NCBI RefSeq assembly: GCF_001194135.2
Contig: NC_068990.1
Span: 88,015,399 to 88,079,398, forward strand
Direction: 5' to 3'
Origin: Octopus bimaculoides
Lineage: Eukaryota
Length of the DNA stretch: 64,000 bases
Part shown: piece by piece, positions 43,072-64,000 of the stretch
Layout of the letters: each line of letters opens with the position of its first letter
Position numbering within the stretch: the stretch's first letter is position 1
Translations under genes and position numbers: made by a program
The notes under the pieces: generated by a model
Database searches by the model: none
What the model was told of the DNA's origin: nothing
Seen by the model: only the letters and a program-made list of their open reading frames with translations

Positions 43072-43640
43072 ACAGTTGAGGGAACCCGTGGAAGAGGTAG
43101 GCCCAGGAAGACCTGGGCTGAGGTGGTGAGGCAAGACCTTCGTACATTGGGCCTCACCGAGGCGATGACTACGGACCGAGACCTTTGGAAATGGGCTGTG
43201 CGTGAGAAGACCCGGCAAGCCAAGTAAGATCGTTGCCAGTGCCCCTGGACTGGTTCTTGTGCGGGTGGCACATGAGATGCACCNNNNNNNNNNNNNNNNN
43301 NNNNNNNNNNNNNNNNNNNNNNNNNNNNNNNNNNNNNNNNNNNNNNNNNNNNNNNNNNNNNNNNNNNNNNNNNNNNNNNNNNNNNNNNNNNNNNNNNNNN
43401 NNNNNNNNNNNNNNNNNNNNNNNNNNNNNNNNNNNNNNNNNNNNNNNNNNNNNNNNNNNNNNNNNNNNNNNNNNNNNNNNNNNNNNNTATATATATATAG
43501 TGGCATTAGAAAGGACATCCAAGTCAAATCAAACAATAGTTTGGTACAGCTCTCCAGCTTGCTAGCTCTGGTCAAACCAGCCAACCCATGCCAGCATGGA
43601 AAACAGATGTTAAAGGATGGCAATGATGATGATGATGATG
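43072..43640 (+). mobile_element. RTE-clade LINE 3' end (ORF C-terminus, gap, then tail)
   Basis: 43072-43227 reads TVEGTRGRGRPRKTWAEVVRQDLRTLGLTEAMTTDRDLWKWAVREKTRQAK* without disruption; ccagcatggaaaacagatgttaaa...gatgatgat tail at ~43590-43645. Confidence 0.8.
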
Positions 43641-46038: not shown

Positions 46039-47025
<987 letters not shown>

Positions 47026-47647: not shown

Positions 47648-48182
47648 NNNNNNNNNNNNNNNNNNNNNNNNNNNNNNNNNNNNNNNNNNNNNNNNNNNNN
47701 NNNNNNNNNNNNNNNNNNNNNNNNNNNNNNNNNNNNNNNNNNNNNNNNNNNNNNNNNNNNNNNNNNNNNNNNNNNNNNNNNNNNNNNNNNNNNNNNNNNN
47801 NNNNNNNNNNNNNNNNNNNNNTATACATATATACATATACATGTATGTATTTATAGGTGTGCGTATGCGAGTATATATATATATATATATATATACAAGT
47901 ATGTATGTATGTGTGTGTATATATACATATATATATGCAAGCATATATACACATATATGTATGTATATATATATATTCACATGGAAACATACAAATATAT
48001 GTATACAAATATTTATATATTCAATACATACATAAACACGTTTATATAAGTTGTGTGTGCATATATATGCATACATACATAAACATGTGCGTATATACAG
48101 ATATATAGATATATATATATATATAAACATTTGCATATATATATGCGTATATAGGCATGTGTATAACAATATATGTATATAT

Positions 48183-48214
<32 letters not shown>

Positions 48215-48249
48215 TTGCATGTATATACATATATATATGGAAGTGTTTT

Positions 48250-48292
<43 letters not shown>

Positions 48293-48434
48293 NNNNNNNN
48301 NNATATATATATATATATATATATGTATATACATATATATATATATGCATGTGTGTAAATATACATATACATGTATATATATATGCACATATATATGCAT
48401 ATATATATATATATATACACACATGTATATGTAT

Positions 48435-48478
<44 letters not shown>

Positions 48479-48529
48479 GCATATATATATATTCACATAT
48501 ATATATGCATATATATATTTAGTGCATAT

Positions 48530-48600
<71 letters not shown>

Positions 48601-49402
48601 GCATATATATATATATATGTATATATATATTTATATATATAAATGCATATACATATAAATGCACATACATATATATATATATATATATTTATATATAGAT
48701 ATATATAAATGCATATATATACATATATATGCATATATATATAGATATATATGCATATATATGTATATATATATATAAATATATATGCATTTATATATAT
48801 ATATATGCATATATATTTATATATAGATAGATATATGCATGTGTATATATATATATATATATANNNNNNNNNNATGTATTTGTACACATATATATATATA
48901 TATATATATGTTTACATATACATGTATGTATATGTGTGCATAAATATATATGTGAACATGTATGTATGTATATATATGTACGTTTACACACATACACATA
49001 TATACATATATATGTACTCAAATATAACACACAAATTCACTCATACACACACACACATATATCTTATATGCATGTGTGTATGTGCATGACTGTATATGTG
49101 TGTAAGTGTGTATGTGTGAGTGTGTGTTGTGTTATAATTTATCTATTTGGCTTTGGAGGAAAGAAAACTATCTAACAAACAAAAAAAAACACAAAGAAAA
49201 TGAGATATGTAATAAAAATTGAAGTTATGAGTTGTGTATTTTATCACTGATTTCTAATTATTTAATGAACTATTCTTTCATTTCACTAATGATGCTTTGC
49301 ATTAATTTAATATTTATTATGCTCAGTTGAAATATTTCATTGATATTACATGTACATTACATGCATACATTTATATTTACATATGTTTACACGTGTGCAT
49401 CA

Positions 49403-49445
<43 letters not shown>

Positions 49446-49459
49446 GATGTATATATATA

Positions 49460-49551
<92 letters not shown>

Positions 49552-49615
49552 TAGGTATATATATGCATATATATGTTTGTATATATGTGTGTGTATATAT
49601 ATATATATGTATGTT

Positions 49616-49646
<31 letters not shown>

Positions 49647-49790
49647 ATATATATATGTGTGTGTGTATGTGTTTATACATACATGTGTATGTGTGTATAA
49701 GTATGTATTTATACATATATATGTGCGTCTATATATACATATATAAATATATATATATATATATACTCATGTATAAATTTTAACACAGAT
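47585..49790. repeat. ~2.2-kb (TA)n/(TG)n/(CA)n low-complexity block downstream of the channel stop codon
   Basis: Direct inspection; interrupted by three gaps. Confidence 0.95.
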
Positions 49791-56516: not shown

Positions 56517-56725
56517 TTATGTCATTTTTCTGAGAAGGGGATTAATTTGGTTCTCTCTGTTGCCAAAATCACCTCCATCATTATAGTGGTTGTATTTGCG
56601 CACCCAGCCACCTCGTGGATTGTTTAACTTGAATGGCCATAGGAAGTTGGAAGCGTATTTGAAGTGTTTGCCAACAGTGTGGATTTCATGGATTAAATCT
56701 TCCATACAAATGATACCAAAGCGAC
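56517..56725 (-). CDS. RPL7: RPL7 last coding exon (209 nt, [14 protein letters not shown]...LLRKMT*)
   Basis: Acceptor ttttag at 56726-56727 (minus); TAA at 56517-56519. Confidence 0.95.
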
Positions 56726-59700
56726 CTAAAAGAAGGAAAAAAACCATAATATATCATAAATAATCAAGTGGATCAAAGAGATTATCAAACAAATTTAAAA
56801 CAAAATACATCAATATTTGTACAATCAAAATATTTATCACTAAAATACTATCCTTTTAACTCAACACATTCAAAGCACAACAAGCCAAAGTAACCACAAA
56901 GCAATTCTATTTAATGCTTTATACAGTCAATTGGATGCTTTATGTGCATGTATATATAATTCACAATATGGATGTCTGTTCAGATTGTCTTTTAAATTCA
57001 CTAACAAGGATTCGGTCAGACCAGCATTATAAAAGACGTTTGCCCAAAGTGCAACGCAGCATAAATGAACTTAAAACCATGACTTCAGAAACAGTAAGTG
57101 GAAATGACCAAACAAAAAGTACTAACAGGAACTGGTGACAATATGCTACTACACATGTTTACTGTAACTAAAATTTAATAACAAAATGTTTTTATGTTAG
57201 AGGGAATTTGCTGCCTTTGTAGAAAGAGAGAGTGCTAAAATTTACTTACCAAGCTTCCTTTCAATGAGAGCATTATCAGTCAATGGAATACGTCGTCCTT
57301 CTATTTTACCATATCCTCTTTTATAGACCAATTCACGAACACTCTTCAGGTTAGGGTACCTAACAATAACAAAAAAAAAATCCATGTCAAAATCAAGATA
57401 AAACAAGCTTATTCAAAGCGACAAGATAAATGTATTTTAATATGATCAAACGATCCCACATCAGGCAAAATATATTTGTAATTTATTTGCCTCTCCGTAT
57501 ATCCATAAAAAGATATTCTCACTTAGTCAACTGATAACCTTCAAAGGATATTTTGTCAGCTCATGTTATTCAACACCTCTTCTGTGTAACTTTAGCCTCA
57601 TTCGAGAAAAAACTGTCAAAAGTGTTCCTATTTACACCATCTATGTGTGTTTTCTTTGCAGTTTATTAAGCAAACTTACGACATAAAAAAGTGGATTCCT
57701 TTCCTCCATGATTGAAATACTGAGTCGGCATGAAAGTAATTTCCTTTTCGGAAATAGAGTTACAATTTTTTTTTAATGACTTTTTTCTATGTTATCTTTT
57801 TCCTTCTGACATTTGATAGCTGTTACTTTTTGCTTACTTTAGAAGCAAACTACACATAATTCTGTTCACAGTTGTCAATTATAAAATGCTGTGCAAAATC
57901 GAACACTCACATTTTACTGACACAAGCAACATTAGTAGTGCTCATGCTGAAGTTAAAATGAAAATCACACCACACGAATGATAACATGCCTGGATGGCTG
58001 CTTACCCCCAAGTGATATAAGGTTCGCAAATCTTGATCATCTGTAAAGTTGCTTTGTTGACTTTGACAAAGACACCATTGTTAATCTGTCTCAGCCTAAA
58101 CAACTGCATTACCTTTCTGGGTCGTGGATGGACTCCATTGATACTGGAAAATAGAAATATGAGATAACATACATGAAATATAGGAAACTGAAATAGGAAC
58201 ATTACATTTCATCAAAAGTTGGAGTTATTAATAGTGTTGTAAGGTAGCATTAACCCTTTCTAACACACCTTATGTGTTTCACTTAAATTCTAAAATAATC
58301 ATCAACATTTAACAACCATATTCCATGCAGATATCAACAGTAGATTAAAAAAAATTAGGTCCACAGGAATTGAAATTTGTGGACTAAAAGGTGGTTGAAA
58401 GTGGTGGAGATACAGGAAGATAAGCAAATATACTGACTAGTTCAGATTTTGCAGCCTTCACATACATGTTATTTACAGTTTAGACTGAAAATTAATTGCT
58501 TCTGCTAGATACATAGAACTTAAGATTACAAATGTTGAGCTAGTTCTGCACCAAGTCTATTGCTTTATTCTTTAATACAGGAAGTCACTTTTCCTTACAT
58601 CATCATCATTTAACGTCTGTTGTCCATGCTGGCAAGCAGGGAAGTTGCATCAGACTCTAGTCTGACTCGGCATAATTTTTATAGTTGGATGCCCTTCCAA
58701 ACACCAACCACTTGACAAGATTGTGCTGGGTGCCTTTAAGTGGCACCAGCCTTGCAGGTCAATCTTCACCACCATGGAGACCAGTCCTAACAGTTCTGCT
58801 GTGGAATACCGGTTTACTTGAGCACAGGAAGGTGTCAGGCATCTTGGTCTTCTTTCATCTCACCTGACAAGTCCAGAGTCCTGAGATCATTCTTCAGTAC
58901 TTCGTCCCATGTCTTCCTGGGTCTCCCACTTCCACACTTTACATTTACTTTGAGAGATCGGCACTTCTTTATGGAGCTGTCAGCAACCCTCGTCACATGA
59001 TCAAACCAGCAGTCTTCTCTTACACGCAGCCATTAATTCCCATGCCTAACTTCTCTCTCAAAACATTAGCACCATCAGACATGTATACTTATGTATACAA
59101 ATCCAGCAGGGTATACTAGCCTCATTCCTTTCTAACCTTCACATGTCCTCTGCATTCAGGGCTCACGTCTCACTATCATGTAGAATGTAAAACACTCATA
59201 TACACCATATAGTTCTCCAAAACCCCAATCTTCACCCAAAATCAAGAGAAAAAAATAAGCTGTTACAATGAGGAGTTAAGAATTTGAAGTAATCTTTTTG
59301 TAGTAACATACCCTCTAATTCTTATGACAAAAGCCAATTTTGCACCACTGGGAACATAATAGTTTCCAGCTCGGCGAGCTTCACGACGCAGCCTGATCTC
59401 CTCACGTGCCTGCATGCGATACTCTTTTACATATTTCTCAGCTCGATGAAAGATTGTTATCTTCTTCTTCTTGAGTTTCTGAAGTGAAAGATTAATTATT
59501 GGATCACTCTACTGTCTTAAAACTAGAATTGGGAAGAGAAAACTCTTTTGCCATTCATCTGTGAAAAAATATTCAGATGGCATATATAAGCTAACAACTA
59601 TTTAACATTCATTCACCTGTTTCAGTTTATAAATCAATAATTCCTTACAGTTGAGTTACATAACCACTAAAGAGAGATTAAAATATTTTTATAAATATCT

Positions 59701-62700
59701 AGACTACATTTTAACAGATTTTAATAAAAAAAAAAAAATTAAAAAAATTACTGTTCAATTTTTAATCAAAAACAATTTTCCCTTTTCAACATCAATATCT
59801 AGTTCTAATAAAACCATCTCCACTAAAAAGAATGCAAAATGATAAAGGAATAGTAAGAGATACCTACAGCTTTTTTCTGGAGAATATTAGCCTTTCGTTT
59901 AATAGCTTGAGCTTTCCTGGTTTTCCTTCTCTTCAATACACTTTCAGGTACTTTGGGGATTTTTTTTTCACTGGAAAGAAAAATAATTTTCAGATAGAGA
60001 AAATACAGAAAAAACACTATATTCATGGAATTTAGAAATAACTTCGTAAGAGCTTAAATTAACAATACCAAAAGATGTAATAAGTAAATGAGAAAACAAA
60101 ATCACACTTACCCATCAGTTTTTTTCCCAGCACTGAAAAATTAAAAGTACACATTGAAAATTTTTTTTGTTACTCAATATTTCAAATAAACCATTTAGAA
60201 TTTTAAACTGATGATAATCATCTAAAATATATTTAACTAGAAAACACATATATATTGCATATTATTTGGACTGTTTTTAAAAGCACAATAAAGCACTCAG
60301 GATATTGTAAGTTGACCTCATCAGCTGAACAGATAATCATCATCATCATCATCGTTTAACGTCCGCTTTCCATGCTAGCATGGGTTGGACGATTTGACTG
60401 AGGACTGGTGGAATAATGTATAGATTAATAAGGTTTTAATGAAAGCTACAGGGTTAACTTTCCAGATGTTTATAAAATTTGTGTGGCATGATCCTTACTC
60501 TTATGTGGTATGCATTCATAATGCATGGTGCTCAGTATTATTTAACTAAAAAGTAAATATATCACATTCTTCAATGAATTTACTGTTGAAAACATGTAGA
60601 ATGTTTGTGAATAAACATGTTTCAATGCTTCGATATTGCCAAAGTGTATGGAGTTAAAAAAGGTTTAACACAGAGTGAGTGATAGTGTGAGGTCTATTGG
60701 TTAGGGTACTGCACTCACAAATGCAAGATGGTGATTTCAATTCTTGGACTGGACAGGGCAAGCATTCCACTTTGCTCCTGCCCACGCAACAGTAAATGAG
60801 TAACCCTACAACTGACTGGCATGCCATTCAGTGGGAATCTGCTCCTGCCCACGCAACAGTAAATGAGTAACCCTACAACTGACTGGCATGCCATTCAGTG
60901 GGAATCTTATAATCTCTCATATGCTACAAAAACTTAACTAACCCAATGAGCCCTAGAACTTGAAACAGTAAAGGTTGCACACAATAGTGTGGACAAGATA
61001 TTCTAGTATCACCTTAACCATTTTAGCATTTAGATTACTCTCCCAAATTTATTGCTTACTTATTAAAACTGTTTTGTATAAATCATACATTATCTTGTAG
61101 CTATGAAATCTCACTGAGAATGATATAGTAGGGTAGGTGTGAGAGGCAGGATCTAGCTGGTTTGAATACAAAGCAGGTAGAATATTTCGCCAGGTTAAAT
61201 GCTAAATGGTTAAGCTCTAGAGCTTTAACAATTAAAAAATGGTTATCTACACAAACAAGACAACACCTGAGTCAATCAGAGGCCTCTACTAACAGTCCCA
61301 AATCCCTCAAACTCTAACCTACAGTTTTAAACAAGGACACATTGGATTCTATAGTTCTAAAACGTTCTGAAAGGACAAGTTAGTCACTGTTGGAATGCTT
61401 TTGATGAATATGAATGGTGAGCCGGAATTAAAAATCTGATAAAATAATACTCACTCTCCAGTTTTCTTTGCAGCCCTGAAAAATTAAAATGACATCACAG
61501 TCATATATTGACAAACACAACAAAGTAATTTTCAATATTACATAGCTAATGTTTATATTAAAATTAAGACGTATCTTCATAATCCTCATTAACATTTGTG
61601 TCTTTTTGCTTGCATGGATTAGACAAAATTCATTAAGACAGATTTTCTATGATTGGATGCCACTTCCGAGCACCAACCCTCACCCGTTTTCAAGTATGGT
61701 AATATTTCTCTATGGCCAGATAACATCTTCACAGATTAGGACGACAGATTAGTAAAGCACGTTTACAACTAGGTTGATGTCAAGATAGAGACACAAGCAC
61801 ACACAACTACCTAATTTCCACAAAGCTGTGATTGAACTGGGCTTACAAGACATTTGTCCAAGTGTCATTGCATGAGGCTGAACTGAAAATCATGTGGTTG
61901 GGAAGAACTTAACCACATAGTATTGCTTTAAATATTCAATAATTCTGAAATTTTTTATATGTATAACTTGTCAACAAAATTATTTAATTCCATAAAAGTA
62001 CAGCCAGCCATCACTTACCAACAAGTATGGCATAATTATTTTAGGTACCTAGTCATGAGTAAACAGATCCCCCCACAGCCCCTTTAGAGGCAATATCCAG
62101 GATATCAGCAGGAGGGAGAGAGGGCTGTTTCAGTAGCCTGTTAGTACCTTTAGAGCTGAGTAGATTAGAGCAATCCACTGTCCAGTTCAAGAATTGAACC
62201 CATGACTTTACCCAGAGTCAAACATCCATAGACAATGACCTTTCACATACTCAACTACACATGAACAAGATAATACTCACACTCGAGTTTTCTTGGCAAC
62301 ACTGAAAAATTAAAATAACAGCATATTTAAGATCTATATTGATCAACATTTCAATTAAGTGATTTACAATATTATATAAATATGAAAAACATCTAAAGAA
62401 TTTACTGTCTTAAATTACTAAAATATACTGCTTTCATAATCATTTAATGTCTGTTTTCAATGCCGACATGGTTTAGACGGTTTGACTGAAAAGTAGTAAG
62501 CCAGGGAGCGGCACCAGGTTCCAATCTGATTTAGCATGGCTTCTACAGCTGTAGGCTCTTCTTTATACCATTGTGGAAAGTTCCAAGGGACTGTTGAAGA
62601 AAAGTGGGGCAATAATGGGGTGGCTATTCATGTAAAAACAACAAAATAATGGGTTCAATAGGTCAAGTTTTATTTGTGAAATACAGTTGCTTTGAATTTG

Positions 62701-63074
62701 TTTCAAAAAGAGTCCTATGTTTGTGACGTTTAGTTGGGGTGGGGGTGCCAGGAATGTTGCCCAGGTGTCAAGGGGGCAACAGCCCAAAAATTCCTGGGAA
62801 CCAATGATGTAGAACATATGTAAGGATTTACACCACTTCATTCTTCTATGAGACCACCTATCCTTATAGATGGTTGGTTATCACTTATCCTATTAAGTTT
62901 ATTTGTAATTTCTTACTACCGATTACAGCTGAATAGATTTAAGCAATGCACTGCCCTGTTCAAGAATTGAACCCATGACTTTACTCAGAGTCAAACATCC
63001 ATAGACAACGAGCGTTCACATATTCAACTACATATCAACAAGGTAATACTCACGTTCTAGTTTTCTTCAAAGGA
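56517..63074 (-). CDS. RPL7: 60S ribosomal protein L7 (uL30), multi-exon; start codon lies beyond the right edge of the window
   Basis: Spliced translation ...[16 protein letters not shown]...AEKYVKEYR...[37 protein letters not shown]...[25 protein letters not shown]...LTDNALIE...[16 protein letters not shown]...NFLWPFKL...[19 protein letters not shown] is clearly eukaryotic L7. All introns are GT-AG with consistent phases. Confidence 0.97.
57250..57359 (-). CDS. RPL7: RPL7 internal exon (110 nt, [36 protein letters not shown])
   Basis: AG at 57360-57361, GTAAGT donor starting at 57249; missed by the ORF track. Confidence 0.95.
58006..58143 (-). CDS. RPL7: RPL7 internal exon (138 nt, [19 protein letters not shown]...EPYITWG)
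   Basis: ttccag acceptor at 58144-58145, GTAAG donor at 58005. Confidence 0.95.
58597..59230 (-). mobile_element. RTE-clade LINE 3' fragment in an RPL7 intron
   Basis: Minus-strand remnant [47 protein letters not shown], followed by the ...gacgttaaatgatgatg tail. Confidence 0.75.
59312..59478 (-). CDS. RPL7: RPL7 internal exon (167 nt, [21 protein letters not shown]...[10 protein letters not shown])
   Basis: ttcag acceptor at 59479-59480, GTATG donor at 59311. Confidence 0.95.
59868..59970 (-). CDS. RPL7: RPL7 exon (103 nt, [34 protein letters not shown])
   Basis: ctttccag acceptor at 59971-59972, GTAGGT donor at 59867; begins in phase 2. Confidence 0.93.
60112..60132 (-). CDS. RPL7: RPL7 21-nt microexon (AGKKTDG)
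   Basis: ttttaatttttcag|tgctgggaaaaaaactgatgg|gtaagt; phase 2 at both ends, in frame with the next exon. Confidence 0.85.
60774..60907. repeat. Perfect 2 x 67-bp direct tandem repeat within a SINE remnant
   Basis: gctcctgcccacgcaacagtaaatgag...gtgggaatct is repeated exactly (60774-60840, 60841-60907). Confidence 0.9.
61455..61475 (-). CDS. RPL7: RPL7 21-nt microexon (AAKKTG-D)
   Basis: ttttaatttttcag|ggctgcaaagaaaactggaga|gtgagt. Confidence 0.82.
62281..62301 (-). CDS. RPL7: RPL7 21-nt microexon (VAKKTR-V)
   Basis: ttttaatttttcag|tgttgccaagaaaactcgagt|gtgagt. Confidence 0.82.
63054..63074 (-). CDS. RPL7: RPL7 21-nt microexon (PLKKTR-T)
   Basis: tatttttattttgcag|tcctttgaagaaaactagaac|gtgagt. 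Confidence 0.8.
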
Positions 63075-63147
63075 CTGCAAAATAAAAATAACAGTATATT
63101 ACACATCTATATTGATCAACATTTCAAATTAAGTGATTTACAATATA

Positions 63148-63355
63148 TTGGCACTGGTGCATAATTATTGCAGCGTTTTTTGGGCGAAATTTTATCAACA
63201 AAAACATCTTTAAATGATTATTCTGGAGCATATTTACCATCTACTTCAATTAATGCTCACAATTTGCTTGGCAGACAGTCAGGCCGTCATTTAAAGATGT
63301 TTTTGTGGCATTAAATTTCTTCAAACTAAGCCGCAATAATTATGCACCAACCCAA
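63148..63355 (-). mobile_element. Mariner-derived MITE inside one copy of the RPL7 tandem duplication
   Basis: TA flanks; TIR ttgg(gt/ca)tggtgcataattattgc(g/a)gc at both ends; remnant transposase C-terminus ...LPSK..ALIEVDGKYAPE*; absent from the sister unit at ~62370. Confidence 0.85.
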
Positions 63356-64000
63356 TATGAATATGAAAACCATCTAAAGAATTTACGGTCTCAAATTACT
63401 AAAATACACTGCTTTCATAATCCTTTAACGTCTGTTTTCATCGCTGGCATGGGTTAGACAGTTTGACTGAAAAGCAGTAAGCCACACCAGGTTCCAATCA
63501 GATCGAGAATGGTTTCTAAAGCTGGATGCCCTTCCGTACACCGTTGTTAAAACGATGATAATCATTATTCACCTTTATACATGTAGAGCTGTGGTTCCCA
63601 AAGTGGACTATTGCCCATTCCACTCCACCCCCCTGGGAGCAGTGGAAGGTTCAAAGTGGACATTGAAGAAAAGCGGGGCAATAATTGGTAGTGATTCATA
63701 TAAAAACAAAATAAAGGGTTAGCTTAAGTTCTATTTGTGAAATATAGTAACTTTGAATTTGCTTCAGAAAGCAGTCTATATTTGTGATGGTTAGTTAGGG
63801 TGAGGGTGCTAAGAATGTCACCTGGGCGTCAAGGGGGCAACAGCACAAAAATGCCTGGGAACCACTGATGTAGAGCATGTGTGAGGATTTACACCACTTC
63901 ATTCCTCTAAGAGACCACCTATCTTTATAAGTGGTTGGTTATCACTTATCTTATTAAGTTTATTTGTAATTTCTTACTACCCATTACAGTTGAATAGATT

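Follow-up and report, generated by a model that had tools for sequence, protein, structure and literature searches.

The micro-exon genes (MEGs) of Schistosoma contain runs of very small symmetric exons lying between long introns; these exons can be skipped in frame, which gives rise to families of nearly identical proteins, and their ratio of non-synonymous to synonymous substitution rates (dN/dS) is about 1 or higher (PMC4350168, PMC10526429). They are the closest in architecture to the gene described here, RPL7 of Octopus bimaculoides, which encodes the ribosomal protein uL30 and is read on the minus strand of a 64-kb stretch of the genome of this species (hereafter the window). The octopus gene likewise includes symmetric exons of 18, 21 and 24 nucleotides (nt). 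Together these form an array that probably adds a long lysine-rich tail to the N-terminus of uL30. The two systems also differ. Most of the coding sequence (CDS) of a MEG is composed of microexons, whereas the octopus array accounts only for the N-terminal quarter of RPL7. MEGs encode secreted, parasite-specific proteins and have been described as restricted to platyhelminths, while RPL7 encodes a housekeeping ribosomal protein without an apparent signal peptide. In addition, the octopus units are clear tandem paralogues, unlike those of the MEGs, and skipping is seen at the annotation level only, in a sister species.

Other known systems share individual features with the array. In fast skeletal troponin T, with its 5' mini-exons, and in the collagens, with their 54-nt exons, the repeat unit of the protein corresponds to an exon. 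Troponin T also combines small symmetric N-terminal exons to vary a charged tail, but compared with the octopus array these exons are acidic, fewer in number and demonstrably alternative. The neural microexons controlled by SRRM4 (nSR100) are no longer than 27 nt; for the most part they are solitary, neuron-specific and deeply conserved cassettes that insert a few charged residues, and a UGC just upstream of the 3' splice site is a mark of the class. The octopus microexons resemble them in size (21 nt) and in the charged in-frame insertion, but are lineage-specific, number 12-14 and have near-consensus splice sites.

There are also precedents for the extended protein. In rodents, the same protein is expanded at the same end by short basic repeats (270 amino acids (aa) in mouse and 260 aa in rat versus 248 aa in human RPL7). 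The rat protein is reported (Lin, Chan and Wool 1987) to carry five tandem 12-residue repeats, and the rodent repeats probably lie within an ordinary exon. This expansion is far smaller than the octopus tail. In insects, extensions rich in Lys, Ala and Pro and resembling histone H1 occur in RpL22 and RpL23a of Drosophila and in RpL23a and RpS6 of mosquitoes; they are lineage-specific and have evolved independently (PMC1934995, PMC11764897). Like the octopus tail, these extensions are long, of low complexity, Lys/Ala/Pro-rich, poorly conserved in sequence and located outside the conserved domain. The octopus tail differs in that it is carried by uL30, in another phylum, with one repeat per microexon, and its likeness to the insect extensions is one of composition.

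Four microexons of the array lie within the window. They are listed below with coordinates in the window and, where useful, in three loci through which the protein was threaded: L001 for O. bimaculoides (window position 64000 corresponds to L001 16351), L002 for O. sinensis and L003 for Argonauta hians.

63054..63074, minus strand: microexon (T)PLKKTR(T), 21 nt, ninth in the sequenced array (L001 17277-17297) and contained in the RefSeq protein XP_052826945.1
62281..62301, minus strand: microexon (T)VAKKTR(V), 21 nt; O. sinensis orthologue at L002 21268-21288 (VTRKTR)
61455..61475, minus strand: microexon (V)AAKKTG(D), 21 nt; O. sinensis orthologue at L002 23315-23335 (ALKKAR)
60112..60132, minus strand: microexon (D)AGKKTD(G), 21 nt, last in the array; O. 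sinensis orthologue at L002 24510-24530 (AGKEAG)

The last of these also has an Argonauta orthologue, identified by position and sequence (L003 10041-10061, AGDKTG), and the first is a recent duplicate of an exon located just past the window end.

Each acceptor is formed by a T-rich tract followed by cag (ttttattttgcag / ttttaatttttcag) and each donor is gtgagtat or gtaagtgt (GTGAGTAT or GTAAGTGT), while the Lys-Lys-Thr (KKT) core is coded by AAGAAAACT or AAAAAAACT in all four. Each microexon opens on codon base 3 and closes on two bases of the next codon, so that the introns on both sides are of phase 2. When spliced together and to the exon at 59970-59868, the four read PLKKTRT VAKKTRV AAKKTGD AGKKTDG in one open frame; stops occur in the other two frames. 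The pattern YAG-N7-AARAAAACT-N5-GTRAGT matches the 64-kb window four times (0.01 expected), and these matches are exactly the four microexons. The looser pattern YAG-N21-GTRAGT gives seven matches against 2.04 expected. The preliminary description of this DNA, which was made from the sequence of the window, had pointed to these same four segments with their splice sites, phase and KKT, and had concluded that any of them could be skipped without a frameshift. Both observations are borne out: the segments contain no stops, are of phase 2 at both ends and have lengths that are multiples of 3.

The remainder of the gene was found downstream on the same strand by a tblastn search with human RPL7, with 50-79% identity per core exon, leaving aside a weak match to the first exon. 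The coding exons of the conserved uL30 body are as follows.

59868..59970, minus strand: core exon 1, 103 nt, (G)...QKKA; opens the conserved uL30 body and corresponds to the 100-nt exon 2 in oyster RPL7
59312..59478, minus strand: core exon 2, 167 nt; N-terminal helix domain of L30
58006..58143, minus strand: core exon 3, 138 nt
57250..57359, minus strand: core exon 4, 110 nt
56517..56725, minus strand: last coding exon, 206 nt followed by a TAA stop codon at 56519-56517

An AATAAA, read from the sequence at 56503-56498, is the putative poly(A) signal. Along its entire length, the spliced protein shows 100% identity with XP_052826945.1 ('60S ribosomal protein L7, partial [Octopus bimaculoides]'), encoded on chromosome CM046610.1. 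It matches the Pfam domains PF08079 (Ribosomal_L30_N, 83.1 bits against a cut-off of 31.6) and PF00327 (Ribosomal_L30, 63.7 bits against a cut-off of 23). The lengths of the core exons, 103, 167, 138, 110 and 206 nt, correspond to 100, 167, 138, 110 and 206 nt in the oyster, with identical phases. In addition, the sequence deposited for chain F of PDB entry 9EHO, a cryo-electron microscopy structure of the O. bimaculoides ribosome, is that of the 343-aa Octopus isoform X1. By its domains, orthologous exon structure and ribosome-entry chain, the gene is that of uL30/RPL7. The four segments are its coding exons, as had been proposed; the accompanying statement that gene predictors miss all four is contradicted by the RefSeq model, in which they are present at 100% identity. 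Moreover, because the 103-nt exon begins in codon position 3, there is no route into it from a start codon without the microexons. Although the layout of the array is thus already contained in a RefSeq model, it is apparently undescribed: literature searches on octopus RPL7 microexons, ribosomal protein microexon arrays and the octopus ribosome provided no description of it, nor of a comparable array in any core ribosomal protein.

The number of four is an effect of the window edge. A repeat block extends beyond the window at 64000, and some 115-135 nt past that end there is a fifth KKT exon (L001 16216-16236), so that a count of four is too low; the microexons in the window are the last four of at least 12. 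In O. bimaculoides, the 103-nt exon is preceded by at least 12 consecutive microexons (21, 18 and 24 nt, followed by nine of 21 nt). They encode, in order, TPKKAEA, PKKVEK, KKEVAKKP, DAKKPAE, KKVADKG, AAKKPVA, DAKKPVA, PVKKTRT, PLKKTRT, VAKKTRV, AAKKTGD and AGKKTDG, which agrees with the proposal of a modular basic N-terminal tail: the spliced RPL7 contains one Lys-bearing repeat per microexon. Two assembly gaps occur, one inside the array (L001 14250-14349) and the other at its 5' edge (L001 9613-9806). The latter removes the 5' end of the gene, which explains why XP_052826945.1 is designated 'partial'.

The O. sinensis isoform X1 includes 20 coding exons, the first 15 of which measure 11 (with the ATG), 18, 21, 21, 21, 18, 24, 24 and seven times 21 nt, that is, 14 microexons after the ATG exon. 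Argonauta hians has a 17-nt first coding exon (with the ATG) followed by five microexons (one of 18 and four of 21 nt). All 31 microexons of the three genomes are 18, 21 or 24 nt long and are of phase 2 on both sides. In O. sinensis X1 they contribute about 297 nt to a CDS of 1032 nt, and in O. bimaculoides 252 nt to one of about 976 nt, the rest being supplied by the five ordinary exons. A scan of the three arrays with a strict splice pattern, intended for hidden or decayed copies, returned only the annotated exons, with none extra in O. bimaculoides, and one unrelated 27-nt match in O. sinensis.

Comparison with the oyster indicates where the array is inserted. In oyster RPL7, a coding exon 1 of 14 nt is followed by a single phase-2 intron and then by exons of 100, 167, 138, 110 and 206 nt. 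As judged from this exon structure, the octopod array occupies the ancestral intron 1, a phase-2 intron that is single and plain in the oyster, and this location accounts for phase 2 on both sides of every unit. Within the array, neighbouring units also share intron homology. In the window this is seen in one extended feature.

62150..64000, minus strand: two tandem exon-plus-intron duplication units, 86-89% identical; the upstream unit is incomplete, as the window ends within it

The matching blocks of the two units are 130-281 nt long (62150-62354 with 62923-63127; 62374-62503 with 63355-63484; 62659-62939 with 63720-64000). The sequence flanking the microexons constitutes a 57-nt family with four copies in the window, and the intron flanks are 88-97% identical among five units. 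Since the introns are homologous as well as the exons, the array appears to have grown by tandem exon-plus-intron duplication; the earlier suggestion that the segments are paralogues arising by exon duplication is therefore well founded. Some of these duplications are younger than the separation of O. bimaculoides and O. sinensis, because the flanks of such pairs are only about 5% diverged, compared with a synonymous divergence (dS) of 0.135 between the species. Synteny blocks between the two show most exons to be one-to-one orthologues, with the lineage-specific copies located mid-array.

Two further repeats occur in these introns. An interspersed repeat, with TTTAACGTC...CCATGCTAGCATGGGTTGGACG as its core, is present in RPL7 introns at 58598-58634, 60344-60401, 62432-62489 and 63413-63470, and elsewhere in the window at 10889-10925 and 43578-43614. 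From its sequence it looks like a short interspersed element (SINE), two copies of which seem to have been carried along by the duplication of an exon unit. The intron separating the third microexon of the window from the fourth contains a perfect 67-nt tandem duplication (60773-60906; two copies, 100% identical).

In Octopus, the tail encoded by the array measures from 85 aa (the partial O. bimaculoides model) to 102-106 aa. It is composed of 32-33% Lys, 18-23% Ala and 8-9% Pro, with a net charge of +23 to +25. Among 119 RPL7 homologues, the region preceding the PxVPE motif has a median length of 15 aa and is longest in Octopus (85-106 aa). No Pfam domain is found in tail residues 1-90, and the N-terminus (MVAESKKGDK...), read by eye, is charged and without a hydrophobic stretch. 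AlphaFold, with a shallow 33-sequence alignment, predicts coil with a confidence score (pLDDT) below 50 for residues 1-102 and a confident helix for residues 111-172. A long tail of this composition does not in itself demand microexons: RPL7 of the hemipteran Apolygus (274 aa), the one insect RPL7 compared, has a 37-aa Lys-rich tail inside a single 175-nt exon. As the hemipteran tail fits one exon, it is the coding by microexons that is the unusual part of the octopus tail.

A protein search with the tail and about 55 conserved N-terminal residues gave only two weak matches, both with uL30 domains, since the low-complexity tail defeats such searches. A JGI metatranscriptome contains two transcript-like contigs, about 1 kb each, which encode RPL7 proteins 78% identical to that of octopus with K/A/P-rich tails of 56-100 aa. 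One of them (L004; JGI 3300019137, 1169 nt) encodes a full-length RPL7 of 341 aa, with a core 78% identical and a tail of about 100 aa in which no heptad period is obvious. Our guess is that these contigs derive from decapodiform cephalopods. In that case, expression of long tails would extend to relatives of the octopods, and if L004 is from a squid, the long tail is older than the octopod heptad array.

The constraint acting on the array was estimated by comparing O. bimaculoides with O. sinensis, using nine orthologous microexons and defining the splice flanks as positions -20 to -1 and +1 to +10.

Core CDS: identity 96.7%, dN/dS 0.07
Splice flanks: identity 95.2%
Nine orthologous microexons: identity 87.8%, dN/dS 0.97
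Deeper intron: identity 88.2%

The value of dS is the same in the core and in the tail (about 0.135). The tail is not uniform: dN/dS is 0.51 for the five distal exons and 1.46 for the four proximal ones, which include three of those in the window. Amino-acid changes affect 2 of 22 Lys codons and 14 of 41 other tail codons (Fisher p = 0.036). In the O. sinensis orthologues of the KKT exons (VTRKTR, ALKKAR and AGKEAG), KKT is replaced by RKT, KKA or KEA. The preliminary description had argued for selection on coding function from the retention of length, frame, splice sites and the KKT core. This can be upheld for length, frame, splice flanks and Lys codons, but the KKT core is not retained between species and the non-Lys codons change at the neutral rate. 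Inclusion of the exons does appear to be selected, because the splice flanks are conserved above the intron background.

Evidence concerning the use of the exons comes from annotation. There are seven RefSeq isoforms in O. sinensis, X1 to X7, of 343, 336, 336, 335, 328, 322 and 322 aa. Using only the unambiguous parts of the splice mapping, we find that the differences among them consist of ASKKAEA (one 21-nt exon), an 8-aa block (one 24-nt exon) and PKKVEKKKEVAKKP (18 plus 24 nt, 14 aa). All of these are located in the distal half of the array, and the orthologues of the four exons in the window are present in 7/7 isoforms. The two O. sinensis ASKKAEA exons (L002 10239-10259 and 10838-10858) are identical, as are their 12-nt upstream and 8-nt downstream flanks, and the O. 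vulgaris model has a single copy. The 7-aa difference between X1 and X2 could consequently reflect copy-number variation or an assembly duplication instead of skipping. For O. bimaculoides, a single RPL7 product was found in the protein collection searched. A TGC is present at -5 to -3 of the 63074 exon and at about -22 to -20 of the 62301 exon; none occurs within 25 nt of the 61475 or 60132 exons.

These observations only partly agree with the earlier proposal of isoforms with tails of variable length. Seven O. sinensis isoforms do differ by whole microexons, but the orthologues of the window's four do not vary among them. At the level of annotation, such isoforms are plausible when the whole array is considered; for the four exons in the window the annotations lend the idea no support. 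These four are most probably included constitutively, with skipping, where present, mainly in the distal array; we infer constitutive splicing from their near-consensus donors and T-rich acceptors, which are conserved above background.

We consider it probable that, taken as a whole, the locus is best explained by a real coding array of microexons, tandemly duplicated, which adds a Lys-rich tail to uL30 and of which the four members in the window are mostly constitutive. The array would have grown by repeated tandem duplication of units of about 0.5-1.3 kb, each comprising a single microexon with its intron, so that every xxKKxxx repeat corresponds to one exon. The spliced exons would then add a tail of 85-106 residues before the conserved N-terminal helix of uL30, rich in Lys, Ala, Pro, Thr and Val and predicted to be without regular structure. 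Selection would maintain spliceability (through the strong conserved flanks), frame (fixed length and no stops) and the lysines, leaving the residues between the lysines to drift and the copy number to turn over rapidly between species. The tail itself would most likely be a flexible polycation facing the solvent on the 60S subunit, with a role in binding of rRNA or expansion segments, in charge neutralisation or in nuclear or nucleolar import. This role is suggested by analogy, because insect RpL22, RpL23a and RpS6 carry H1-like extensions.

Several observations weigh against this explanation. For O. bimaculoides, the evidence that the exons are used is a computed RefSeq model together with conservation across species, and with a partial model and two gaps at or inside the array, the copy number in this species is uncertain and must be regarded as a lower bound. 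The prediction of disorder in the tail is weak, the AlphaFold model being poor overall (mean pLDDT 49.7). A tail dN/dS near 1 is also what would be expected of a tail that is tolerated but without function. Finally, when three paralogue lineages are compared, variability in the exon is 3.5 times that of the flanks (9/21 versus 26/211 sites, p = 0.0012), with nearly all of the exon changes non-synonymous. This island of divergence lies in recently duplicated units (L001 13861-18070, which includes 62281-63074 of the window and continues past its end), and two of the paralogue lineages differ in the exon by six non-synonymous and 0 synonymous changes, with flanks 4.7% different. We rejected conservation of the flanks as its cause, since in the same units blocks of deep intron are 86-89% identical compared with 62-71% for the exons. 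Gene conversion sparing exactly 21 nt was judged contrived. The pattern hints at diversifying selection over simple drift; the sample is tiny, and an odd form of gene conversion or chance could also produce it.

That the segments are chance or decayed pseudo-exons, strung together by a gene model poor in evidence, is extremely improbable. The O. bimaculoides model is indeed computed and partial, but the four pattern matches far exceed expectation, the 31 microexons of three genomes and separately deposited models all retain length, phase, open frame and splice sites, the splice flanks are 95% conserved, the 103-nt exon has no start-codon path without the microexons, and the transcript-like contigs of about 1 kb encode RPL7 with comparable K/A/P tails. 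The main rival, as far as function of the tail is concerned, is a neutral ratchet: the tail would be a functionless by-product of runaway microexon duplication, tolerated at the solvent-facing N-terminus of uL30, with constructive neutral evolution policing only frame and splicing. It would fit a tail dN/dS of about 1 with a dS equal to that of the core, microexons no more conserved than introns, copy numbers of 5, at least 12 and 14 in the three octopods, and the variation in N-terminal length seen elsewhere in the hemipteran, mouse and rat chains (274, 270 and 260 aa). We nevertheless hold it to be unlikely, if well worth keeping in mind, as Lys codons are conserved relative to other tail codons and splice flanks relative to introns, where harmless skipping would let the flanks decay; a Lys-rich composition also recurs in all cephalopod-like sequences found, including the transcript-like contigs.

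Alternatively, the four KKT exons could be cassette or mutually exclusive exons whose tissue-specific use, for example in neurons, generates variable uL30 tails and thereby ribosome heterogeneity encoded by splicing. All exons of the array are symmetric and any subset could be skipped in frame, the O. sinensis isoforms differ by exactly one 21-nt, one 24-nt or 18-plus-24-nt microexons, and two of the window's four exons have a TGC ahead of the 3' splice site. Yet every annotated O. sinensis isoform retains the orthologues of these four and varies only distally. One of the variable exons is one of two identical copies, single in O. vulgaris, and is perhaps a matter of copy number or an assembly artefact; only one RPL7 product of O. 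bimaculoides was found in the collection searched; and near-consensus splice sites (GTGAGTAT donors and long T-rich acceptors) are those expected for constitutive inclusion. This alternative seems to us rather doubtful. A more far-reaching form of it, to which we give little credence, is a MEG-like, splicing-programmable uL30 module. Here the number and kind of Lys heptads would be set by skipping, perhaps per tissue, and the spacers would be under positive selection; the resulting varied polycationic ribosome surfaces would possibly be tied to the fragmented 28S rRNA. The preprint that accompanies 9EHO, a structure of 2026, describes an octopus-specific break in helix 88 of 28S rRNA and slower translation; it includes no mention of uL30 or its tail (PMC13321053).

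Even with a constitutive tail, the real coding array that we favour would be a curiosity of gene architecture and a further independent example of a Lys-rich tail on a ribosomal protein. Runs of 12 or more consecutive exons of 18-24 nt are very rare outside the schistosome genes, and their presence in an essential, highly expressed gene would imply that the spliceosome handles such arrays with the fidelity required of a ribosomal protein. The locus also suggests that protein repeats can grow exon by exon within an ancestral intron. With 5, at least 12 and 14 units in the three species, and with some of the duplicates very recent, the array provides a natural system in which the birth, definition and loss of microexons could be followed. 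If skipping proves to be regulated, it would offer a testable case of splicing-encoded ribosome heterogeneity in an animal whose ribosome structure has newly been solved.

Some other features of the window may be mentioned. No Rfam matches, which might have indicated small RNAs hosted in introns, were found anywhere in it. On the plus strand, 46261-47025 is an open stretch of 254 aa with a domain of the two-pore type of potassium channel (Ion_trans_2, 56.6 bits); it is an exon of a neighbouring gene on the strand opposite to RPL7. The clusters of long open reading frames (ORFs) from 38344 onward, which occupy several frames of both strands, are artefacts caused by runs of N, as verified for the assembly gap at 38.3 kb; similar ORF clusters at about 3.0-3.9, 6.7-7.4 and 13.3-14.7 kb probably have the same origin. 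Very long, imperfect (TA)n microsatellites are located at 47872-48863 (about 990 nt) and 49404-49765 (about 360 nt).

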